A stretch of 63,655 nt of DNA, counting the filler, from Guillardia theta CCMP2712 (lineage: Eukaryota; Protista; Cryptophyta): assembly GCF_000315625.1 (NCBI RefSeq). It is 7 parts of 7 records of this genome, joined end to end, with 100 filler letters (N's around TTAATTAATTAA, not from the genome) between each part and the next. Parts side by side here need not be neighbours in the genome. Positions count along the whole stretch, not along the records: positions 13,166 to 32,651 come from NW_005434617.1; 6 more parts are not named here. One strand, 5' to 3'. The position numbers and the translations under genes are program-made. The notes beneath the pieces are model-generated. The model made no database searches, had not been told where the DNA came from, and saw only the letters and a program-made list of their open reading frames with translations. Positions 85-27,177 of the stretch are shown in pieces. Positions within the stretch are counted from its first letter, which is position 1. Each line of letters starts with the position of its first letter.

Positions 85-3000
85 CTCAACACGAGCCGCA
101 TAATGGTGGCCATCCCATCCCTACCCTCAAATATCACAATCCTCCTCCTCCTCCTCCTCCTCCTCCTCCTCCTCCTCCTCTTCGTCAAGTCCAGTCATCG
201 ACACCGCACCTTCTCACTCTCAACAATGTGGACTTTCTCGAATTGAATCTCTTCGCAACATTTTGCTTCCGCCTCTCCAGCTTCTTGTTTCTTCTCCTCC
301 TGCAATGACATGCTTGCGTCCAGCAGCAACTGCACCGCTGCCTCAGTCCCCAGCCCGTTCACCTCCTCCTCGATTTTCGTCACCTCGGTGCAACCTGACA
401 CAGGGAATCAAAATTCTCCCTCAAAATTTGAAAATAGACAAGGTGAAAATGAGGTTTCGACAACAAGAGCCAGGGAGCGGTAGCTACACGACGACTCACC
501 TTGTTCTTTTCTTGCCCCAACATCATCGAACTTTGACAACTTGACAGCACACGTTAGAAGGAGGAGAGTGGGGACAAGGAGGAAGAGGAGGCATGATGAT
601 GATGATGATGGAGATGATGACGAGGGAGATGATGACGACAACGATGATGGTGATGATGATGATGATGATGATGATGAAGGCGAGGAGTACGAGGAGGAGG
701 AGGCAGCGTCCACACCTCACTCGTCGCGCTCATGAATTCGGAGTTGTGGTTTATCCCCTCAAACTTGCCCTTCATCGATCGTCAAGGTCATCAGGAAAGA
801 CGACAACAACAACATCTATTCACCACTGCCGCAGCTGCTTCAGCGTCGCCATTATTTACAATCGGGTCGTAGGCGCCATTGGTTATGTTCACGACAGCTG
901 TTACATCCCTGGCCCCTTCGCCCTTGGGTCTGATGTCCGTGAGGAGAGAGTTGGAAGCGAAGAAACCTGGAAAGTTGAAACACAATGAGGTGAATCGACG
1001 GATTCAAGACATGTTGAGCAGCGAAACTGTTGTCACCTGTGGTTATCTGGGGTAGAAAGTTTCCGAAAGGAACGAAGAAAAAGCGAAAAAGCTGTAGGAT
1101 CCCATCAGAGTCAACTGAGATAACAACGACAGGAGTCTGAAATCTCTTCATTTCACGTTTCCATGGCGCAACTCTATCATATCAGCACCGAAAAGGTTCT
1201 TCAACACGTCAAGATACAGGGAGGCAGCACATTCACGTCATAAAGTCTTAGCTCCGCTCTCTTCAACACGTCAAGATACAGGGTGGCAGCACATTCACGT
1301 CATCAAGTCTTAGCTCCGCTCTCTTCAACACGTCAAGATACAGGGAAGCAGCACATTCACGTCATCAAGTCTTAACTCCGCTCTCTTCAACACCTTCATA
1401 CCTGCGAGAAGATCATCCTTGCTGTAGAGAGCGTTGACTTGAGGAGACTTCCAACTACAGGTAATGACATGATCGCCTGCGTTCTTTAGTGAGCAGTGCA
1501 AGTCTGTCAACAACAAGATCTCACTGTTCCGAAAGTTGTGACTGTCGGAAAGACGACGCGAGCGACTGACTTTTCTGGCTCTTGTTCAACTCGGCCTGTG
1601 CTGACCACAACATTCGTCGATTGCTCTTCATTGTTTGACGGCTTGTTCGCGTTCTGTCAACGCACGGGTTATGCCTTGACGACGTGGAGGCGGGAGGGAT
1701 GGAGAGGAATGTCGAGTGGAGGGGAGGACAGGACGAGAGAGAGGAGACGGGGAGAAGAGACAAGAGGAGTGGAGTGGAGTGGAGTGGAGTGGAGTGGAGT
1801 GGAGTGGAGTGGAGGGGAGTGGAGTGGAGAGGAGAGGAGAGGAGAGGAGAGGAGAGGAGAGGAGAGGAGAGGAGAGGGGAGGGGAGGGGAGGGGAGGGGA
1901 GGGGAGGAGAGTGGAGGATAGAGTTTTAACCTGATCCTGAAGGAAGAACATCGCCTCCTCCATCTCTTCTTCGATCGCAACTCTGTAGATCTTCTCGGGG
2001 TGCACGACTGAGATTTCTCCTCCCAGCCAAGCGACCAGAATCTGTAGAGGCAAAGTTGAGATTCCCTTCCGCAGGCCTCCCTGCTCCTCTCGTGCCTACA
2101 CGCCTTCACGCTCCCGCTCTCGCTCGTACCTCCCCCCCACCCCCCCCTCCACCCCTTCATTCCTTTTCCTTCTCCTCCTCTTCCTCCACTTCATTCCTCC
2201 GCCTCTTGCGGTGTCTCCTCTTCCTGCCCTTGCTCCACCTATTTCCCCTGCTCACCTTCCCGTTCGGCTCGATGTCCACCACTTCGCCAACAGAACCATT
2301 CCATGCTCTTTCCTCTTTCTCCCCGCTGTTCTGCTCCGCGTCTCCAGCCTGGTGATCACACGACCCTCCCGCTGCTGATTCCCACGCACAAGTCCTTTCC
2401 TCAGTATCTAAACGAGTTGCTGTTGGGATTCCTTGTACGTCTCCCCCCTCCAAACTTCCATTCTCATGGGCCGCCACGTTTCCTGCCGGCTTTTCTGAAG
2501 CAGAGTTTTCATCCTCCTCCTTCATTCCCTTGCTTGTGCTTTCCTCCTCGTTGCCCGAAGGTTTGCCCCCGTCTGTGCATGCTCCTGTCTCCAGCCTTAC
2601 CACTACATCTCCCATACGGAAGCTGAAATCTTGATGAGCCTGGTACAAAGCTCAATGGCTTGCAAGGGAGGGAGGGAGGGGCCAGAAAAGGAAGAAGAGA
2701 AGGGAGGGAGGGGGAAGGGAGGGAGGGGTAAGAGAAGGAAGAAGAGAAGGAAGGGAGGGGAAAGGGAGGAAGGGATTCAAGGAGGAGGATGGACGGAGAA
2801 TGGAGGCAAGGAGTAGGGGCGCGGGAAGGGGGAAGAGGGAAGATGAGGGAAAGCTGGAGAAGGGAGAATCGGGGAGGAAGGAATAACGAGAATGAGTATA
2901 GAGAAGGGAGGGAGGGATGGAGCAAGGAGTGACGGAGGAGAATTGAAGAGGGAGGATTCAGGAAAGGAGGAGGGTGCAGGGGCGGATAGAGGCGGGTGGA

Positions 3001-13284: not shown

Positions 13285-15194
13285 TCATCTGATAGAAAGA
13301 AAGCATTGAGAGACGCAGGGGAGGGCCACAATATTCAAAGTCAGGAGGAGGAGGAGGAGGAGGAGGAGGAGGAGGAGGAGGAGGAGGAGAAGTAAACTTA
13401 TCACCTGCCGCTGTGGCGCAGGGAGCAAGGAGTGCAGTTGGACCAGCTGGGTCATATCGGAGAATCCGAGCAGGAGCCTAACGACGGCAGTGCTTCTGTT
13501 CCCGCGAACTTCCTCCGCACAAGACAGCTGGGTCGAGAGCAGAGCAACAGCGTCCACCAGCCCGACGAGCTCAGTCGCCAGCGACTCGGACGACTCCAAG
13601 TACTTGCCGTCCGCCGGGCCACAGGGGACGAGGAGGGCAGCGGAGGCGTCCTCCTCCCCCCGAGCCAATGACCACGAGCGCAGGCGCTGCAAGAAGCTCG
13701 CCTTGGACTTGTTCTTCCTCCTCTCCCCCATCTCACCGCAAATCACCATGATGACGTCACCGGAGGCGAAGCTGCCGTAAGAAAAATTTCCTCTCTCTAC
13801 CTCCACCCAGCTCGTCCTCCAAGCTCTGTCTTGCGGCAGGACGGTCTGCTGCACGTAGAAGCGGGAGGGAGACGAGATGGTCCTGCCCAGCCAGACAATG
13901 TTGACTATCTTCTGACTTGCGTTGCTCTGCTTCAGATAGAGATCTCTCCTACCGCCGTCTACCTCCTGCAAGGAAAACTCCTCCTCCCCAACTGACTTTA
14001 GCCTATCCATCGCCTCCTCCAACGTCCTCTGCCTGCCTTCCGCCTTCTCCCCCGCCCCCCCCTCCTCCTGATCCTCCCCTCCCTCTCCCCTCCCCTTCTC
14101 AACATCATCAGGAGGAAACGGAAGCTCATCATCCTGCATGTAGTTCTCCGGAGCGAAGTCGTCGACCTGGCGGTTCAGCAGCAGCACAGGAAGCTTGGGG
14201 TTGAAGATCTTGGCGAACGCCGAGAGGAGGGAGGAGGTGCGGAGGAGGAAGCTTGTCCTCGACAGCACCAGACTCTCCACCAGCGCCTCCTGCCCCTTCC
14301 TCATCGGCGACCCCTCGAACTCCCACGCCCACAGCGGCATTGCGTCTCCCCCCGCGTCCTCAGACCGAAGGAAGCCCTCCTGCGTGACCATCGCACCTGG
14401 GGGCAGGCGCTTAGAGAGGAACTCGATGAATCGTCTCTCATCAGTCGCCACGTAGACGAGGGAGGAAGGGAAGTGCTTGCGGTAGCGCTCTATCGCCCTC
14501 AGCACTTCGTCCCACGGCACCCGCGGGGCCTCTCCTCGGCTCCTTCCGCTCTTGTCCAGCCCCCGGTAGTGGACCCCCAGCACATGCTTCCCCCCGAACA
14601 CTCGCTCCACGTACGACTGCACCTGCTCCAGCACCCAGCGCTTTGGCTGGAGAAAGGACGTGACGATGTCATGATCGCTGCTCAGGTTCCGAAGCTTGCG
14701 GGGGATAACGACGGTCTCCTCGTACCTCCGCTGCTCCTCCTCCACATGCTCCACCTCCCCCCGGGCAAGATCCTCATCATCCCTGTGGGAGCCTTGGAGA
14801 GCCAGTCCTCTCCTCTCACCGCGTCCGCGTACTTGTCGAGGTAGGGCGCCAGAACCTTCCTCCGAATCGCCTCCCTCTCCCTCTCGCTGACCATGGGCTG
14901 AGTGAAGAAGTACTCGATCCAGTTGTCGCCGTATGTCTCCTCCCAGAAGTTCCCTCCATGGAGGAAGAAGAAAGGCTTCATCCCCAGGTGCCGAGCATAG
15001 CGCACCATGTTGGTCACGTAGCTCAGGTGCGCGAAGAACCCGCTCAGTACGAGGTTGCACACCAAGATCCCCCGCACGATCCTCTCGTCCTCCTCGTCCT
15101 CTTCCTTCGGCGTCGGAGCAAGTGACACATGGAAGTGTAGCAAGAGCAGCACCGAGAGCAGGAGGAGAGGAGGAAGTCGAGCAGCAATCGCCAT
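13285..15194 (-). CDS. NodZ/GT23-like fucosyltransferase with signal peptide and C-terminal extension; apparent 1-nt frameshift near 14760
   Basis: Leader PPLLLLSVLLLLHFHVSLA; SGFFAHL...DNWIEYFFTQP; GDP-fucose-binding motifs LGVHYRGLDK, VYVATDE and EALVESLVLSRTSFLLRTSSLLSAFA. ORFs 14682..15200 and 13285..15060 join if one G is added to a G6 run. Confidence 0.75.
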
Positions 15195-15660: not shown

Positions 15661-16183
15661 CCTTCCTCTCATCTCTCTCCTCGCCCTCTCCCTCCGTGCA
15701 CAAAAGATCTCCGCCATATCATTGAACCCCCGACAAGGTTCGGTCCTATCAGAAGGAGGGGTGAGGGTCATATACCCCACCGTATCTTTATCTATCAATA
15801 TTGAGCTCTTGGTACCGGTGTGAATTAGTCCACAGGGGTACCATATTCTCGCAGATGGCGTTGGGGGTTGGGTTCTGCATAGTATTCTACTCCAAGAAAA
15901 AAATGGGGTACTTTATTGGTAAAATATGGGGTGGGGTAAAGTCATTGTGGGAATTAGTACGGTGGGTGGTTGTGGTACAAGGGCGGGGATCATGGCAAGG
16001 CAGGGAGGAAGAACAGGACGGGAGGAGGAGGAGGAGGAGGAGTAGCAGAGGAGGGGAGTGAGAGAGACAGCGTGAGAGACTTCATCTGGATCCCCTTACG
16101 CTCCTTCTGTGCTTCATTTGATCTTCCTGTCCCGTCACCGTCTGCGCTCTGCATTGTTCGGAACAAGTTGGACGCAGGAAAGC

Positions 16184-18927
16184 ATGGGATCGCGCGAAGT
16201 CATGGGTGCACTGATCTTTGTCGTCATCGCGACGTTCTGCAATTCTTTGGAGAGCAGCTTTCCCGTTGCCAATCGTCTGCTCCGCCCGGCATGCAGGGTT
16301 GTGCGCTTGAGGGGAGGGAGTGAGAGCACGGCGATACAGCCCTACGATTCTGTCGGCAAGCAGCTGGAGAGTGATGAGATTGAGCCAGGGCTGAATGCCA
16401 CCTACCTCAAGCAGGGAGAAGGCTTCATGCGCCCTGGCGCTGAGGACGAGATCCTCGTATCCTACGTAGTGAGGAGCCATGGCGAGGTGTTGAGGGAGCA
16501 GGAGGTGCCGGTTTGGGTGTACCTGGGGCAGGGCGCCTTCCCCGACCATGTGGAGAGAGCGATCCGCAAGAGGCTGACGCGGTACTCGACGCTGAGTATC
16601 GTCTACAACGAGACGGAGGAGGAGTTCGAAGTCTCCCTCCTGGACTGGAACACCGTGTGGACGTCGGGTGACGGGAGGATTGCTTTCAAGTCCTATGGGC
16701 AGCCGACCAACTACAGCCCGCCGGTGGGGGACAGCGACAACATCACTGTCGCGCTCTCGGAGAAGAGAGTCTCATGGTGGAGCAACGTCAGCAGCAGCAA
16801 GGACGCCATGGTGAGCTACCTCCGGTCGCTGGACGAGGAGCGGGAGGGGCTGAAGACAGTCAGCGCCAAAGTCCCCCAGACTCTAATGAGCATGTCGCCC
16901 GAGATGCTGCAGCTGATGTCGAAGACGGCGGCGTCTCTCAAGGTTCAGGACGGCTTCCTGCGGTCGAGGAGGAGGCAGGTCACCGCGGTGCTGGGGAACG
17001 AGGAGGTGCAGCCGCAAGAGCTGGAGCTGGCACTGCACTTTCTGCGGCCCGGGCAGAACGCGACCTTGCTCGTGGCCGTCAACCACACGCTGGAGGAGGG
17101 GAAGGAGACGCAGGTCGGCCGTCTGGCCTGTCCTCTCCCCCTGCCGTTGGGAGGTGCGCTGCAGTTCTGATCGACTTCCTCCCAGGTGGACGAGGGTACC
17201 GCGATCCTATACCACATTGAGCTCATCAGGGATGACTCAGCAGATGAAGTCAGCACAGAGCAGAGGTAGGAGCGGGACGCACGCGTCCTTCACCTTCCTC
17301 CTCCCCTGAGCGCTTGGAGCACAGGCTTCAGATCGCGTTGCAGAGGAAGGAGAAAGGAAACTTCTACTTCGGCCAGAAGAATTATGCCCGCGCCCTCACC
17401 CTTTATGGCCGAGCTATGACCATGGTGCTCCTGCTGTATATTCCTGCTCCTGCTCCTGCCCCTACCCATCATCGTCTTAGACCTCTCGTCATCCTCTGCT
17501 ATCCTTCGTCCCGTCTGCCCCTGCCGCCTCCTTGTCTGCATCTTTCTGTTTCTCTCCTGTTCCTCCTCTTTACCTGGACCGTCAGATTGGCGCGAGTGCG
17601 GATGACGAGCATGTTCGCAATGCTACTTCCAACCAGTACGCGAAAACGGAGCTGGCAGATGAGGTATCTTTGCTTGTACTTCCCCTACTCTGTTATCTTC
17701 TCTCCCATCCTCCAAAACCCTCACTGTTGTTCTCCTTCGTCTTACTCCCTCATCCTTCGTCTTCCTCCCCACTCCCTCGCTCCCTCGCTCCCTCCCTCAG
17801 TTCACGACCGCCATCGCCGCTGATCTCCTGCAGGTGCGCGAGATCGAGGTCTCGCTCCTCTTAAACGCTGCCTCCTGCCACCTTCGCATGCCGAAAACCC
17901 TCATGTCCTCAGAGCAAGTGAGCGCGCTAGGAGGAAGCAAGGACGCGCATCCTGCTCAACGAGCGCTGATCGCCATCGACCGAGCCATCACCTTGAAGCC
18001 CAACAACAGTGTGTCACCTCCTCCCCTCCTCCTCCTCCCCCTCGTCACGGGTGGTTGCAGCAAAAGCTTTCCTGCGGCGGTCCGAGGCCCACGAGCAACT
18101 CAGAGAGTATCATATCGCTATGCAGGATGTGAAGATGGTCGTAATATCCCTCCATCCTATCTTCTTCGCCGCGTTCCTTATCTCCTCAGATTCGTTCCTG
18201 TCCTGTGCTTCTCGCCCTCCTCTTCTCTCTCCCCTCCCTTCCTCTCGTTTCTGTTCCTCCCTCCATTGCCCCATCTGCCACCAACCTCCCTCCTGCTCAC
18301 TTGAAGTTAGGCGATGATCTTGCAAGGAGATGTAAACTCGACGGCGTGCGACAAAAGGATGGGCAGGTTGAAGCAGCTCGCGCGCATACAAGACAAGAAG
18401 GACGCCAAGGTCTTTGCCAAGATGTTTGAGCCGAGCAAGGAGAAACCTCGCATCAAGTCTCGATCGCAGGAGGAGGAGGAGCATGTGAGACGCTGGACAG
18501 GGAGAGGAAAGGGGATGACGTGTGCGGCAGAGGATCGAGATGCTCGAGACGAACATCAGTGCCACGGACGACGCCAAGACGTCGCGGTGAAAATCCCTCT
18601 GCCCCCCAGCTCCTGCCGGCTCCTCTCATCCTTCTCTCCTTATCGCCTCCCTTAAATTTGACATGCTTACCCCCCCCCCCCCCCCATCCCCCCCGACATC
18701 CTCTGACCTTCTGCAACAGCATGAAAGCGGCTCAACAAGCCCTGCCTGTTCCCCCCGTCGAGCCGTCAACCTTCAAGGAAGCACCTGCTGAAGTCGTTCC
18801 TCTTCCTCCACTCAACACTTCCAGTCGCATCCTCGTCAATGACGCTGAAGCCCGGCAAGTCATCCAGCAAGGAGGATGGCTGTACGAGCCTGACAACGAG
18901 CCGAGGGATGGCTGCGAGGTGAGGTAG
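16184..18927 (+). CDS. FKBP-like domain(s) + TPR protein with N-terminal signal peptide, multi-exon
   Basis: KQGEGFMRPGAEDEILVSY...LGQGAFPDHVERAI...FEVSLLDW and VLGNEEVQPQELELALHFLRPGQNATL (degenerate FKBP folds). TPR exons: ALQRKEKGNFYFGQKNYARALTLYGRA, LLLNAASCHL, DRAITLKPNN|SKAFLRRSEAHEQLREYHIAMQD. Confidence 0.75.
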
Positions 18928-19249
18928 TGGAGTGAGGAGGGTAAGATGATGATGAAGCGATGGGATGAAGTTGGATGAAGGGCATGTTTGATCGAGTGAT
19001 GATGAAAGTGCTTGTGCGATAATGCACTGAGAAGCATCAACTCACGTAAAAGAAAGACTTAACAAACTTCGAGATTTTCTCTGTTTAATGTTTTCAACCT
19101 TGGGGAGCAAAGAAAAATGAGCACATTTTCAACGAGCTCGCCCAAGCACGCGTTCTAGCATACAGATGCTTCAATGTACAACTTCTATACAAACACAGTG
19201 ATTGCCGCCAGCGGCAAACAACAGAACTTCGTCTTCCGGAAGAATGAGC

Positions 19250-20406
19250 TCAGTTATTCTTCCAGAAGTCCGTCAAAACCGTGTTCATGCAATCTTCCAT
19301 GAACTTCCTGTGAATCGAGAGGTTGTCGTCCTTGACCTCATGCAGGACTTCCAACCAGCACTCAGCCACATTCTGTCGCTGCGCCATGATCCTCGCTCCC
19401 ATGTCCAGCGGATCGATAAGACACAACGTGTCAGCATCGCGTCCCGTTCCCGAGATCACACGAGGAGGCTCGTTCAGGATGTCGTTAAGAAAGTTCCATC
19501 CCACTCGGCGAGTCTGGACGGTCCCGAACGAGCGGGTCCCTCTGTTCTGCATGTACTCCTTGAGCCAGATGGCCGAGTGCTCGTCCTTGGGGTTCGCTGC
19601 CAGCTCCTCCATCACCTGCTCACAAGCGATGTGCGTGCAGAACTTGATGAGGAGGTCGTAGTTGTCGATCCGCAGAGCAGAGTCATCGTCAGTGGTGATG
19701 AGGAGCCTGTGCTGCTTGTGGAGCTCGGGGTCGGTCCCGTTGTGCTGGACCTTGGCAAGATGATGGCGCCAGTGCTCGGCGTTCTCCCGGGCAACGAGCT
19801 GCAGGTCCTTCTGCCATTCACCCGCGATGTGCTCGCGCAGCTCCATGATCGCAATCGCAGCCTTTCTTGGCCTGATCATCGTCGAGATCTCCATGAACTG
19901 CTCCTGGATGTATGGGTTGCCGCTCGTTCCTCCTCTGTATAGCATCCTCTTCATCTTGTACTCTGAGTCTGCCTGACGATAGAGCTTGGAGATGTACTCA
20001 TGCCATCCGACCTTGAGAGCTCCGTACCCATGCAGGTTGCAAACACCTGATAAGGCGATCAGACTACTAAAAGCATTTAAACACGCAAACACACACCTTG
20101 ATGCTCCATGAAGTCTTCGATGTAGTTGAAGTTTGGGTGGTCACCAACTTCCTTGAGGTTGTGCAAGTACGTCTGGAGGGACCTCTGCGTCAGGAAGTCC
20201 TTGAGGACGTTGGCATGCCCTCTATTCATCTTCATGACCAGGCGGTCTGCGAGCCTTGCTCCGTGGAGCGGGCGAGCAGAAGATTGCTTGAGGCATGCCT
20301 TTTTGAAGTAAAGATTGGGTGCGAATGCTGGTTTCGTGCTGGTAGGAAAGCTTGTAGCAACATTCAGGACGAAGAGGACCGAGCTTAGATACATAAATGA
20401 TCCCAT
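19250..20406 (-). CDS. Putative plastid-targeted protein with two tandem RbcX-like domains (2 exons, intron about 20048-20097)
   Basis: Signal peptide MGSFMYLSSVLFVLNVATS-F plus a basic Ser/Ala-rich transit-like region. Repeat 1: DFLTQRSLQTYL...IMELREHIAGEW...ENAEHWRHHL. Repeat 2: KFCTHIACEQVMEEL...AIWLKEY...RIMAQRQNVAECWLEVL...DNLSIHRKFM. Confidence 0.7.
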
Positions 20407-20829
20407 GGTTTCGATTTCACAGAATAGATGATGTCAATGGCTCTGATAAGGGGGCCAGAACGAGAGCTGGAGCAGAAGGATGGAACAACTGAAGGGACGA
20501 AGTGGATGCAGCGGCCAAACCAGTCCACCAACGATGATTTTCGTGCGAGACTGCCTAGTTGCACTGCGAGCGAGATAAGTCCGTTGACTTGTAAGCCCGC
20601 ACTTCCTGTGCTTGCCTGGGAGAGCAAGAGCAAGAACTGGGAAGAGGGAGAGAGCAGAGGTGAATGCCTTGCTCAGAGGGCCGGGGAAGGTGTGGGAGCG
20701 AGAGGATGGGTAAGGAGGATGGGAGGAACGGATCTGCAGGATGCAATTAAGATCGAGGGAGTAGAGCGGGAGGAAAGGGTTCCGGTCAACCGGCCCCAAA
20801 TATCCGGTGAGGGTGTTGAAATTATGGAA

Positions 20830-22199: not shown

Positions 22200-23200
22200 A
22201 CAGCTACGAGGATCCGGACGGTCCGGGACTCCCGGACGGTGCCCAGCCAGGCATCTTATTACTAGCCCTTTGAGTAAAGAATCCCGGGCTTGACTGACTC
22301 TGCCATTGTGACTCAGTGAATCGGAAACCGTACTCCGACTCGGCCCGGGCCGCGCCGCACCGTCACTGTGACCGGGCCACACTGACCGTTTCAGCCGGCC
22401 CGAGGCTCACTGCCGCAGTGCTCGGAGCCTCGGACTGACTCCTTCGTCGGAAGTTCACTGGGTCAAGTTCGGACGAATCAAGTTGAATCATCATTCAAAT
22501 CATAGTAGCCAAGTCAGGCTAGTACCGCCGGTAGTACCGTGCTCAAAATTGAAACTCCGAGTGCATGGCGTGACTGAGTGCGGCCCCCGGCGCCGCCCCC
22601 GCGGCTTGCCAACCGTAACGTCAGTGCGGCGACCGGACTCGGGGTGACTCCTGAGTCGGACCGGACGCCGCCGGGGTCCCCGGTGTGGCGCAGTCCGACC
22701 GTATCGGACTGGCACGGTCCCGCCGGACTCACGACTCAAACCCTGACCGTTGCTGAAGGTCCGACCGTCCGTACTGATCGGACTCCCGGGCCGGAGTCCG
22801 AGTTCGGTCCCGGGGCGGATTCACAGGGCCCGGGGCCCGGCCGGGCAGTGCCGCACTCAGTGCGGCAACCCGGCGTTGGCAAGTTCAACAGTACGGTACG
22901 GTCCGACGGTCCTGGCCCAGCGGCGAACCGTCGACGGTCACCGGGGTCACCCCCTGGCCCGGCGCCGCGCCCACCGTCACGGCGGCCCGTGTCCTCAGGC
23001 TGATCATCCGGCCCGGTCGTCCGAGCCGGGTGACACTGACCCGTGCAGTGAGACTGCCGCCTCCGAGGCTCGGCGGCCCCGGGCACGGTGAGTGACAATG
23101 CGGCCGGCACTTCCGAAGTTCGGGCCACCTGGCCCGGGCGGCGGCGCGGCGACCGTCACTCGGACTGGACCGACCGTCGACGAGGCTCATCGCCAGCGGC
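22200..23200. repeat. 1-kb GC-rich short-palindrome block upstream of the SLC17 gene
   Basis: Repeated words gactc/gagtc, cccggg, ccggcccgg, cggtcc/ggaccg, gtacggt and cagtg/cactg, without a fixed period. Confidence 0.65.
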
Positions 23201-23208
23201 CAGCTGGG

Positions 23209-24798
23209 ATGGCGGCGTCTTCTTCGGCAGGGGGCGCGGGGCCCTCGGCAGCCCCTGCTCCCTCCTCCTTCTCGCTCTCCACGGCTCATGTACGACCAAC
23301 TCCCTTGAGAAATGATGCAGGGTTCACAGGGAGAGGAGAAGGGGGGGAGGCAAACGAGGACGGGGGTGGGGAGGAGGAGGAAGAGGATGGGGGGAGAGTT
23401 GACGATCCGTGGGAGGAGAAGAAGCTCTTGCACGATACCCCCAGGGGATACATCCCGAAGAGATTCATCCTCTCTCTCCTCTTGCACCTGGGTCTCTTCG
23501 TGGTTTATGCTCTTCGCGTTTGCATCAGCGTGGCAGCGGCAGCGCCAAGCGCCCACGCCCTTCCCTCCAACTCCTCGGTTCCCACAGAGGTCACGGGCGT
23601 GAGCATGTATACGGAGTACTCGTGGACCAACACGGAGCAGGGCATCATCTTGGGCTCGTTCTTCAATGGCTACATCACAACCCAGATCATCGGAGGGATA
23701 CTCGCCCGCAGGTACGGGGGTAAGTCTGTCCTGTTTGGAGGGGTCCTGCTAGCCTCTCTTTTCACCTTTCTCACCCCTCCTGCGTCCAAGAACTTCACCA
23801 TGCTGGTGATCTGCAGAACTCTCATGGGCGCGGTGGAAGGCGTTTCGTTTCCTGCCATCCTCACCATCATTGGTCACTGGGCCCCTGCCCAGGAGCGCTC
23901 GACCATGGTCGGCTTCGTTTACGCGGGTGCGTACACGGGCAACGTCGTGACCTTCCCGCTATCTGCATGGATCATGGACACGTACGGATGGCGCACCATC
24001 TTTTACTTCTTTGCTTGCCTGGGCTTCCTGTGGTGCCTGCTGTTTCACCTGTTCACAACCTCCACTCCCTCGCAGCACAGGAGCATGCATGCGGCCGAGC
24101 TCAACAAGATCCTGGCGACGACACAGGTAGCAGAAGACGTTCCTGCCACTGTTCCTTGGAAGAAGATCCTGGTCTGCATGCCGGCGTGGGCACTGTTCGT
24201 TGTTCACACGTGCTTCAACTGGGCCTTCTACACGCTCCTGACCCAGCTCCCCTCCTATATGGCGCTGGTGCTCGGGTTCAACATGCAGCAGTCCGGCTTC
24301 TTGTCTTCCATGCCCTACCTCTTCATGTTCATCGTCTCCATCCTAGGAGGGATGCTGGCCGACTGGACCATCTCCCGGGGCCTCCTCTCCAGGACGAGGG
24401 TCAGGAAGACATGGATGGTGACTTCCCTCATGGTCCCGGCCTGCTGCCTCGTCCTCTGCGGCTATGCCTCCTCCTGGCCCGTCGCCATCTTCTTCATGAC
24501 CTGTGCCCTGGGCTTCTCGGGGCTGAGCAACGCGGGTTACAGCGCCAACTACCTGGAGATCTCTGCTGGACTCTCGGGCATTCTGATATCGCTCGGCAAC
24601 ACTTTGGCGACGGTGCCTGGGATGGTGTCGCCTGTCTTGACCGGCGTCATCATGGACGCGCACGGATGCTCGATCGAGCATGTGAGCAGCTGCCAGCAGG
24701 CCTATCAGACTGTCTTCTGGATCGCCTTCATGGTGTACACCTTCGGTGCTGTGTTCTATGCTACTTTCGCAACGTCGGAGCGTGTGCTCAAGTTCTGA
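23209..24798 (+). CDS. MFS anion:cation symporter (SLC17/sialin/PHT4-like), intronless
   Basis: IPKRFIL...YALRVCISVA, YSWTNTEQGIILGSFFNGYITTQIIGG, EGVSFPA...WAPAQERS, VPWKKIL, LLTQLPSYM...GFLSSMPY, GNTLATVPGMVSP; about 12 TM helices. Confidence 0.95.
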   Translation: MAASSSAGGAGPSAAPAPSSFSLSTAHVRPTPLRNDAGFTGRGEGGEANEDGGGEEEEEDGGRVDDPWEEKKLLHDTPRGYIPKRFILSLLLHLGLFVVYALRVCISVAAAAPSAHALPSNSSVPTEVTGVSMYTEYSWTNTEQGIILGSFFNGYITTQIIGGILARRYGGKSVLFGGVLLASLFTFLTPPASKNFTMLVICRTLMGAVEGVSFPAILTIIGHWAPAQERSTMVGFVYAGAYTGNVVTFPLSAWIMDTYGWRTIFYFFACLGFLWCLLFHLFTTSTPSQHRSMHAAELNKILATTQVAEDVPATVPWKKILVCMPAWALFVVHTCFNWAFYTLLTQLPSYMALVLGFNMQQSGFLSSMPYLFMFIVSILGGMLADWTISRGLLSRTRVRKTWMVTSLMVPACCLVLCGYASSWPVAIFFMTCALGFSGLSNAGYSANYLEISAGLSGILISLGNTLATVPGMVSPVLTGVIMDAHGCSIEHVSSCQQAYQTVFWIAFMVYTFGAVFYATFATSERVLKF

Positions 24799-24949
24799 GG
24801 TGTAGAAGCGAAAGGAGAGAAAGGAGAGAGGATGGATGAGAGAAGATGGATGCTTGTGTTGTAGTTGTGGGTGGTGGTGGAGAAGAAGACGATTGTCAAA
24901 AATAAGGGAATTGCAAGAATTTGTTATGGCGGAAGGAATTTGGGGCTTG

Positions 24950-27177
24950 TTAAGAATAGGTTTGAGACTTCACTTTCACTTTCCCGTGCCAGGAGCATTC
25001 AACGCAGGGACACACCTGCTGCTTCCCCTTCTTTTGAGAGGATCCTGCAACATGCTCCTCTCCTCTACTTCTTCTCCTCCGTATCCTGCAGGATCTGCTC
25101 TTTCAGGGCGTTCAACCTGCTCCGCACGTCACGCGCCGGCTCTCCCCTCCTCCTCTCACTCACTTCTCTGGAGTGATGAGAGACCCCGACCCCTCCGCAA
25201 GCGTCTTCCTCGACCTCTGCATGCTCTCGTACACTCCCATGGCGGCGCCGATCTGCCAACGTGGGTCACCTCTCCAAGAAGCAGCATCGCTGACGTCACC
25301 ATGGAGGAAGGGTCCGCAGGGTTGGCAGGAAGGAGCACTGTAGTGCTCTCCTTTGCCACCTTGCTGAAGCCCTCCAGATACTTCTCGGCGATCTTGAGAG
25401 CTACCTGCGATCATGCAGGATTGAGACGAGAAGGGAAGAGAGGAGGAAGAGAGGTGTGCGAAGAGGGTCAACCAAGATTCTCACGCAACCCCATCCCACT
25501 AACGAGAAACAGAGGTATGTCCCTTTCTCTTCCCCTCCCTCCGTCCGCTCCCCCTCCTCCCTGGACTGCCTCCCACCCTCTACTCACAGCGTCTTTTCCT
25601 CCAGCCACTTGGATGGCACCAGCGAGTCTCTCGATACTCTTTGCTGTCGCGTCCGCAACTGCTCCGAGTCAACGCACGGCGGGGAGGAGGAGGAGAGCGA
25701 ACGCAAAGGGAGCGAGCATGAGAGAGCATGCTCAAAGAGCAATCAGTCCTCACCGACTAGGATGGCCTCAGCCTCTCCTCTAGCTTGATTCACTCTCTCC
25801 TGATACTCTCCCTCCGACGCCAGCACCTGTGCTCTCTTCCTTCCCTCCGCGATGTTGATCTCTGAGAACTGCTCTGCCTCGGAGTCGAGGATGTGTGCAC
25901 GTTTCCTCCTCTCTGCCTCAGCCTGCGGCCCAAGAACAGCATCAGCGCACGTTTCCTTCTCGTGGAGGTAGAGACCTGCTGGTCCATGGCCTCCTTGATC
26001 TTCCTGGGAGCCTGGATGTCGCGGATTTCATACCTGACAATTATGATCAGTACATGAAGCATGAAATCTTTTGAGGGCAACATAAGACACAGCTGGAAGT
26101 GGCAGCTGCGAATTTAGAAGGAAGATGGTGGTGAAGGTGGTGGTGGAGGAGAAGGAGAAGGAGGAGGAGGAGGACAGGTAGCAGTTAAGGCAGGAACAGC
26201 GAGATGGAGCAGAGCTCGTATCTTACCTCATGCATTCCACCCCCCATGACTCTGAAGCAGCTTGGATGTTGCGCACAACATTTAGGTTGAGGGTCTCGCT
26301 GACCAGGTGAAGTCTCACTAAACAGGAAACCGAGGAGGAAGGGGAGGAGGAAGGGTGGGGGGGATGCAAGAGGGTGTGTGCGCGGAAGAGTGGGAAGGGG
26401 TAGGGGCTGGGGGGAGAGGGGAACAATCCACTTGTTCTCACCGATCCTTGAACGTCTGGTCGAGGGAAATCTTGCCGATCTCAGATCTCATGGTCGTCTG
26501 AGCCAGCTGGGAAATGGCGAACCAAGCATCTCTCACCCCGTAGGAAGCCTTGTACGCATCCACAATGCGGATGTAGAGGACCCCGTCGATCTGGAGGGTC
26601 ACGTTGTCGGAGGTGATGGCTGTCTGGTTGGGGATGGTAAGGGCCTCCTCCTTGAGGGAGTGTACGTAGGCGATCTGATCAACGAAGGGGATGATGAGGT
26701 TGAGCCCGGGCGCGAGCACAGTGTGAAACTTCCCGAACCTCTCTACAACCTGCGAGATCAGACCTTCGTCAGTGCTCTGCGACCCACGTGGTACTTGCGC
26801 GGACATGATGCAGCCGAGGAGGAGCCGGAAGAGGAGCAGCAGGAGCAGCAGGAGCAGGAGCAGGAGGAGGAAGAGTAGGAGCAGGAGCAGGAGGAAGAGC
26901 AGGAGAAGGAGCAGAAGCAGGAGCAGGAGCAGGAGAAGAGAGAGCTACTTACGTATGCCATCTGGTGGGGTACCACCACTGCTCCTATGTTCCAAGGTTT
27001 GTCTGACCTCCCTCCCGCCATCTGCAGCCTTGCGCCAGACGCATGGAAAGCTCTGGATCCTCTCAGATGCGATGGGTTCCTGGACTTCACAGACGCTGCA
27101 CGGCAAGCCTGCAGGGTCGAGTGGCATCTAGCCGCTACTTTAGAGGCTACAGGACGTAGAAGTTTACGTGTATCCAT
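24950..27177 (-). CDS. STOML2: Stomatin-like protein 2 (SPFH/Band 7, mitochondrial), multi-exon
   Basis: Arg-rich mitochondrial presequence; VVPHQMAY|VVERFGKFHTVLAPGLNLIIPFVDQIAYVHSLKE...QTAITSDNVTLQIDGVLY...SQLAQTTMRSEIGK; WGVECMR|YEIRDI; YLEGFSKVAKESTTVLLPANPADPSSMV. The 3' end is approximate. Confidence 0.9.

Follow-up and report, generated by a model that had tools for sequence, protein, structure and literature searches.

We analyzed a 63,655-nucleotide stretch of DNA from Guillardia theta CCMP2712 (referred to here as the window), in which a gene on the minus strand, at positions 19250 to 20406, encodes a protein of 368 amino acids. We found that this protein carries two RbcX domains in a single chain, preceded by a putative plastid leader. 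The homology of both halves to RbcX is established. The host is a cryptophyte with a red-derived complex plastid; an initial annotation of this DNA had described it as an apparently red-lineage alga. The premise that the field deems RbcX absent from red-type organisms is stated outright in the literature: RbcX homologues are described as absent from organisms with red-type Rubisco, and Raf1 and other green-lineage factors are likewise said to lack homologues there (PMC9833100, PMC6508576). Since divergent, tandem-fused RbcX homologues with putative plastid leaders occur across the red lineage, the statement of absence needs correcting. We tentatively interpret the protein as a single-chain, pseudo-dimeric assembly chaperone for RbcL of Form ID Rubisco.

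The gene corresponds to GUITHDRAFT_74455, labeled “hypothetical protein” (Guillardia theta) in the databases, and lies on contig C57 of an 87-Mb assembly of 669 contigs. Its coordinates and strand had been given correctly in the initial annotation, which did not mention a 50-nucleotide intron, the conserved hairpin insertions, the paralogues in G. theta, or the spread of the family over the whole red lineage. Coordinates of the gene are those of the window, minus strand. The reading frame starts with the ATG at 20406 (an in-frame TGA lies 9 codons upstream) and runs through coding exon 1 (20097 to 20406), which holds codons 1 to 103 and one base of codon 104, as far as the GT at 20096. It resumes after an AG at 20047 and continues through coding exon 2 (19250 to 20046; the remainder of codon 104 and amino acids 105 to 368) to the TGA stop at 19252 to 19250. 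Two transcript contigs (1,598 and 1,579 nucleotides, from separate studies) span the whole gene, and precisely the 50 bases of the phase 1 GT..AG intron (20047 to 20096) are absent from them; RNA contigs X1 and X5 thus lack the intron, and DNA run X16 retains it. The exon junction is confirmed by the RNA contigs and by proteins P0001 and P0160. The 5′-untranslated region extends at least from 20407 to 20700, since contigs X1 and X5 reach 20700 and further. The 3′-untranslated region (19100 to 19249, extending past 19100) is covered by RNA contigs and by raw 3′-biased RNA reads, which pile up on a single strand at 19100 to 19600, marking the 3′ end of the minus-strand mRNA. The spliced translation is identical to JGI protein P0001 (364 amino acids, starting at Met5, so that its numbering runs 4 lower than that of the 368-amino-acid protein used throughout this report) and also matches the 368-amino-acid open reading frame (ORF) of an MMETSP transcript. 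We concluded that the gene is a transcribed nuclear gene of G. theta. The GenBank model (XP_005828732.1/EKX41752.1) has 309 amino acids, 59 residues fewer than the transcript-supported ORF. With that length, it would begin at Met60, without the signal peptide and transit peptide (20229 to 20406), and an annotation-based survey of targeting would therefore miss the protein.

The domains occupy approximately amino acids 60 to 212 (the N half; 19721 to 20229, with the intron inside) and 213 to 368 (the C half; 19253 to 19720, which includes the strongest Pfam RbcX stretch); each is assigned from Pfam, from profile matches to solved RbcX, and from a structural model. The internal duplication that the initial annotation had reported exceeds chance: hhalign aligned the two halves with a probability of 89% and an E value of 2.3e-6 over 118 collinear columns, and hidden Markov models (HMMs) specific to one half matched the last helices of the opposite half in most of 166 family proteins. 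The short strings on which the likeness to RbcX had first been noticed are all present in the translation (FLTQRSL, IMELREHIAGE, and ENAEHWRHHL in repeat 1; FCTHIAC, AIWLKEY, RIMAQRQNVAE, and DNLSIHRKFME in repeat 2). The Pfam RbcX model (PF02341) matched the whole protein with 34.7 bits (gathering score, 27; E value, 2.3e-8) and exon 2 alone with 29.2 bits. Single halves fell under the cutoff (20.4 and 21.0 bits; E values, 6.6e-4 and 4.3e-4), and, among 65 family members, the model recognized the isolated N half in 27 and the isolated C half in 14. The N-half profile (65 sequences; A2) matched solved RbcX 2PEO_A with an E value of 3e-5 and 7XSD with an E value of 8.7e-5, and the C-half profile (A3) matched 2PY8_A and 2PEO_A with E values of 4.8e-5 and 3.9e-4. 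In the profile alignments of both halves, the motifs L-T-x-x-A, W-L-x-x-F, and R-I-(M/L)-x-x-R-E-x-I-A-E are in register with RbcX. Searches of solved structures with the single sequence or with a 12-sequence profile gave no RbcX match; the deeper, half-specific profiles were needed. A scan of the whole genome with the Pfam RbcX model did not detect the window gene itself. The sole match in that scan (G000:C22:144739-144870; E value, 0.38) was taken as chance; the ORFs there are not RbcX-like.

The structural model gave the same answer for each half. AlphaFold modeled the full-length protein with a predicted local distance difference test score (pLDDT) of 76 and a predicted template modeling score (pTM) of 0.70; the N half modeled separately had a pLDDT of 95. 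In a structure search with the N half, the best 19 PDB entries were all RbcX, with Z-scores of 9.3 to 11.7 over 103 to 110 aligned residues; the next fold scored 4.2. For the C half (model residues 220 to 364, P0001 numbering), the best 14 entries were all RbcX (Z-scores up to 9.7; 103 to 115 residues), and the next fold scored 5.3. When 48,161 representative chains were compared exhaustively, the five RbcX representatives took ranks 1 to 5. Helical bundles can resemble one another by chance, in which case the protein would be unrelated to RbcX. Middling Z-scores are common among helical proteins, whole-model Foldseek E values were weak (0.2 to 1), and the single-sequence search of solved structures gave no match, as described above. 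However, each half has independent profile matches with the motifs in register, and RbcX fills all the top ranks, 4 to 7 Z units above the next fold, with whole RbcX chains covered. We consider chance resemblance very improbable. Checked half by half with profiles (best E values of 3e-5 and 4.8e-5) and structure searches, the likeness proposed in the initial annotation stands, and the strong matches are to RbcX only.

RbcX chains, aligned over 103 to 110 residues, pass directly from helix 3 to helix 4 without a hairpin insertion. In the window protein, secondary-structure assignment with DSSP in both models places a β-hairpin between helices 3 and 4 of the N half (approximately amino acids 131 to 161; 19874 to 19966), with the loop R-G-G-x-x-G-N-P-Y. 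A second, shorter β-hairpin, also assigned with DSSP, lies in the C half (approximately amino acids 299 to 314; 19415 to 19462) and ends in an L-I-D-P motif; hhalign puts the two hairpins in register. In the first loop, N147 and P148 are kept in 63 of 65 family members, as is P316 (312 in P0001 numbering), which follows the second hairpin. Helices 2 and 3 of the N half are joined by an extra conserved loop. Among the family-specific residues, conservation is highest at Q74, R75, and Q78 (helix 1, N half), H109, N147 and P148, E180, D184 and L185, R229, P316, R327, and W334, and the mean column identity is higher in the first half (30%) than in the second (24%). Such half-to-half asymmetry is possible only in a fused pseudo-dimer.

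Ahead of the two domains, the sequence reads by eye as the bipartite leader expected of stromal proteins in cryptophyte complex plastids. A predicted signal peptide (amino acids 1 to 19, MGSFMYLSSVLFVLNVATS; 20350 to 20406) has a hydrophobic core at amino acids 6 to 17, an A-x-S sequence (ATS) at −3/−1, and Phe at +1, with the cut predicted before F20. It is followed by a transit-peptide-like stretch (approximately amino acids 20 to 58; 20233 to 20349) that is rich in Ser, Thr, Lys, and Arg with 1 acidic residue, is unstructured in the model (pLDDT, <50), and is unconserved in homologues. This is the arrangement that had been described for the leader at the outset, namely, a signal peptide ending ATS-F and then a transit-like region. 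Cryptophyte-type homologues have a signal peptide and then A|F(A/V)P at the equivalent site. An alternative cut in the window protein, KPA|FAP (amino acids 27|28), aligns with the A|FAP of the homologues; we prefer ATS|F, since the alternative is 10 residues beyond the hydrophobic core and has Lys at −3.

The protein belongs to a large family. An exhaustive HMM search of 1.84 billion representative proteins returned 680 proteins with E values of ≤1e-3, 346 of which had E values of ≤1e-10. Among the 150 matches listed, all sufficiently long proteins have the first-half domain followed by the second-half domain. Named members, all of which bear the label “hypothetical” or “uncharacterized,” come from the cryptophytes Guillardia theta and Hanusia phi, the red algae Porphyridium purpureum (KAA8495437.1) and Rhodosorus marinus (KAJ8903756.1), the haptophyte Haptolina ericina, and the raphidophyte Fibrocapsa. 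ESM Atlas clusters of the same two-domain shape (template modeling score, 0.74; 305 residues) are mainly diatom, and the sole green-lineage Atlas cluster matched is a single-domain RbcX. The survey of homologues outlined in the initial annotation thus brought up relatives in red algae, cryptophytes, a haptophyte, a raphidophyte, and diatom clusters. Homologue searches with a 42-sequence alignment or with the Porphyridium protein gave almost no new members, the word index being insensitive. In a quick tree, the window gene falls within a cryptophyte-type clade with 99% support, to which Rhodosorus is sister (85%); Porphyridium, Fibrocapsa, and Haptolina fall in separate clades.

G. theta has three additional, multi-exon paralogues (loci L128 to L130), making four genes in all. 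They lie at G000:C175:73888-75264 (minus strand), G000:C45:241234-245191 (minus strand), and G000:C62:162648-162955 (plus strand). Both half domains are present in each, and each is nearest to a different subfamily. The tandem fusion is old, because the same N-then-C order runs throughout a family of red algae and algae with red-derived plastids. The placement of the paralogues in different subfamilies, together with the spread of the family, indicates that the fusion predates the spread of red plastids and that diversification came after it.

Some family members have additional C-terminal sequences. In three proteins from transcriptomes or metagenomes, disordered tails with 2 to 4 copies of S-W-[YF]-D-x-G-x-R-L are found in P0021 (amino acids 411 to 563), P0043 (amino acids 264 to 330), and P0061 (amino acids 428 to 462), and a PPGF(V/E)W-like motif lies at or near the C terminus of P0043, P0024, and P0075. 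Both motifs may be stickers or Rubisco-binding motifs.

The window protein departs from the RbcX norm of co-occurrence with Form IB Rubisco: its host and named relatives are red-type organisms, from lineages that carry Form ID Rubisco (PMC9833100). We tentatively favor, at somewhat less than even confidence, a role as an assembly chaperone for this enzyme. Once the protein had been imported into the stroma of the plastid, its halves would pack like the two subunits of an RbcX homodimer; such packing is suggested because the model is compact (pTM, 0.70) and helix 4 is kinked in both of its halves, as in RbcX dimers. Packing would create a single, asymmetric cleft at the center, with helix 1 of both halves forming its walls, and the C-terminal tail that is exposed on freshly folded Form ID RbcL would be held there. 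Binding of the tail would stabilize the L8 core or dimers of RbcL until the chaperone is displaced by RbcS. Given the divergence of the halves, a single functional edge and a single functional face would suffice, and the RGGxxGNPY loop, with the invariant Q74, R75, and Q78 on helix 1 of the N half, may form a lineage-specific contact surface.

Several observations are consistent with this role. The protein is predicted to be directed to the plastid. As far as members can be named, the family is confined to hosts of red-type Rubisco (Porphyridium, Rhodosorus, Guillardia, Hanusia, Haptolina, Fibrocapsa, and the diatom clusters). To our knowledge, the function of RbcX is the sole known use of the RbcX fold. 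A need for such a factor has been described, in that Form ID Rubisco has never been assembled heterologously and chaperones that are still unknown are suspected (PMC9833100, PMC6508576). By analogy with a Rubisco-binding RbcX-like protein of Ulva, the repeated short motifs in the disordered tails of some members could also point toward Rubisco.

The presumed partner was compared by using red-type RbcL tails, which were collected from >120 metagenome contigs. In these tails, W-K-[DE]-I-x-F-[ND]-Y-T was the core fixed by the search pattern, which left the flanks free; the surrounding ...ALDLWKDI(S/T)... is nearly invariant. The red-type tail WKDISFNY keeps the Ile and first Phe of the green-type WKEIKFEF, the two residues that occupy two RbcX pockets (PMC4549274). 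We cofolded amino acids 60 to 368 (56 to 364 in P0001 numbering) with a 40-residue red-type RbcL tail and obtained a score of 0.00, which speaks neither for nor against binding, peptides being outside the tested range of the method. The tail was that of a metagenomic red-type RbcL (L066:1060-1179, minus strand) rather than the cognate one, and the protein's own alignment was not used; rbcL is absent from the G. theta nuclear assembly. A minority of the RbcL tails (loci L008 to L127) end in ...ALEVWKDITF(N/D)...TPT.. and are probably a separate group, bacterial Form IC or other. Contig Ga0180037_1075804 (L011) has two facing red-type rbcL 3′ ends, at 1005 to 1036 (plus strand) and 2089 to 2120 (minus strand), approximately 1 kb apart, which could be an inverted duplication or an assembly artifact.

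On the side of the protein, the critical residues of RbcX were mapped through the alignments of the half profiles with RbcX, using a published description (PMC4549274), and counted over 65 sequences. The first cleft position (Tyr17; Leu57 in Chlamydomonas) is hydrophobic in both halves: the window protein has F71 and F239 there, 60 of 65 N halves have F or L, and most C halves have L, A, F, or M. The Arg that matches R75 of Synechococcus 7002 is retained in 56 of 65 sequences in half 1 and in 61 of 65 in half 2. These positions, like the anchors kept in the RbcL tail, favor the chaperone reading.

Other observations weigh against a chaperone role on Form ID RbcL. The second cleft position (Tyr20; Phe60 in Chlamydomonas) is Gln74 in half 1 (Gln in 60 of 65 sequences) and His242 in half 2, where the family has Gln in 18, His in 17, and Arg in 11 of 65 sequences. 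The position of Gln29 is unconserved: half 1 of the window protein has Asn83 there, most N halves have Tyr, Leu, or Thr, and C halves have Glu, Asp, or Ser. At the Arg70 position, the window protein has Ala169 in half 1, with Arg in 38 of 65 family members; in half 2 it has Arg322, with Arg or Lys in just 29 of 65. The hairpin of red-type RbcS is reported to replace RbcX (PMC9833100), and the four G. theta paralogues and many clades fit diversification to several clients. The predicted pseudo-dimer packing is drawn from secondary structure and pTM rather than from coordinates, the putative plastid targeting was assigned by eye, and none of the present computed results links the protein to Rubisco.

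As the main alternative, we considered whether the RbcX fold was kept while the client changed. The red lineage would have retained and reused a cyanobacterial RbcX gene after Form IB Rubisco was replaced, and the proteins would now be plastid chaperones or adaptors for extended tails of non-RbcL proteins, with paralogue-specific clients. Reviews argue that red-type RbcS makes RbcX needless (PMC9833100), which would fit such a change. So would the loss or variability of the mutationally important RbcX positions (the equivalents of Tyr20, Gln29, and Arg70), the new invariant residues (Q74, R75, Q78, H109, N147, P148, E180, D184, and R229), the conserved insertions in the halves, and the presence of four G. 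theta paralogues and many deep clades in the tree. However, the RbcL tail has kept its anchor residues, and all named members come from organisms with red-type Rubisco in common; red algae, cryptophytes, haptophytes, and diatoms share few other plastid features that the green lineage lacks. Moreover, no RbcX-fold protein has another known client. We regard a change of client as possible but doubtful.

A third role would place the protein on assembled Rubisco, as a pyrenoid or condensate client or as an adaptor on the holoenzyme, for example in quality control or in recruitment of activase. G. theta possesses a pyrenoid. The tails of three family members, with their 2 to 4 copies of S-W-[YF]-D-x-G-x-R-L, and the PPGF(V/E)W endings of others have a sticker-like layout, and an Ulva RbcX-like protein with a C-terminal Rubisco-binding motif sits in the pyrenoid matrix (bioRxiv 10.64898/2026.07.16.738900). 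In contrast, the window protein has no motif tail, the red-algal members (Porphyridium and Rhodosorus) lack such tails in the sequences examined, and the motifs are uncharacterized, with nothing on them found in a literature search. We consider a role on the holoenzyme improbable for the window protein.

Beyond the single protein, the tandem family, singly or as a set of paralogues, might be the missing lineage-specific assembly factor of eukaryotic Form ID Rubisco, a prospect that we rate as rather unlikely but well short of negligible. If this were true, supplying the tandem family would let red-algal or diatom Rubisco assemble in Escherichia coli or in plant chloroplasts, and the red lineage would have kept and fused a cyanobacterial RbcX after its own Rubisco had given way to a proteobacterial enzyme. 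The Rubiscos with the best CO2/O2 specificity are among those of Form ID. Expression of red-type Rubiscos in tobacco has failed, and reviews blame unknown chaperones (PMC9833100, PMC6508576). The four G. theta genes, with their orthologues in transformable diatoms, make a short list of candidates for coexpression. The family would also show how, in nature, a chaperone that was once a homodimer has become a single-chain pseudo-dimer, asymmetric and with halves that are free to specialize.

A full-text literature search found no paper on red-lineage RbcX, on the tandem family, or on SWYDxGxRL; it did not cover subscription journals, and an earlier description is possible. Automatic annotation already marks PF02341 on some members, so that the domain match itself is in databases. 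What is new is the evidence that identifies each of the halves as RbcX, the conservation of the tandem fusion and its hairpin insertions, and the spread through the red lineage, and also the family as a candidate assembly factor for Form ID Rubisco.

Near the gene in the window, an ORF of 568 amino acids (23092 to 24795, plus strand) encodes a Major Facilitator Superfamily transporter (PF07690; E value, 1.8e-46). The other long ORFs of the same piece (13288 to 15060, minus strand; 16109 to 17167, plus strand; and 24836 to 25780, plus strand) matched nothing in Pfam. Nothing evident connects the neighboring ORFs with the RbcX-like gene.

Of the known systems, cyanobacterial RbcX (PF02341; for example, Anabaena CA 2PEO/3RG6, Synechocystis 2PY8, and Synechococcus 7002 2PEM) is a close reference for each half. 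The order of helices and the long helix 4 are the same, the motif sites are shared (LTxxA on helix 1, WLxxF on helix 2, and RI(M/L)xxRExIAE on helix 4), and Z-scores are 9 to 12 across whole chains. However, cyanobacterial RbcX is a homodimer of ~15-kDa subunits, whereas the window protein has two diverged copies in one chain, with a hairpin of ~30 residues in half 1 and ~16 residues in half 2, and a conserved loop joins helices 2 and 3. In addition, Tyr20 is changed to Gln or His, Gln29 is unconserved, and Arg70 is partly kept; the gene is nuclear, with a putative complex-plastid leader, and the host has red-type Rubisco.

The RbcX-I and RbcX-II proteins of eukaryotes (Arabidopsis 4GR2 and 4GR6; Chlamydomonas RbcX-IIa 5BS1/5BS2) are likewise nuclear encoded and plastid imported. 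The cleft of Chlamydomonas RbcX has aliphatic residues and Phe rather than Tyr (Leu57 and Phe60; PMC4549274), comparable to F71 and F239 in the window protein, and green-algal RbcX also has lineage-specific loop insertions. RbcX-I and RbcX-II are single-domain, green-lineage homodimers that act on Form IB RbcL and have conserved Gln69 and Arg118; in contrast, the family described here is tandem fused, belongs to the red lineage, and is more divergent (11 to 17% identity in structural alignments). The Ulva RbcX-like protein UM003_0241 (bioRxiv 10.64898/2026.07.16.738900) has features beyond the chaperone core, including a C-terminal short linear motif that invites comparison with the tails of some family members. 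It differs in being from the green lineage, in being described with one RbcX domain, and in having a green-algal Rubisco-binding motif, whereas the window protein ends with its second RbcX domain and has no tail motif.

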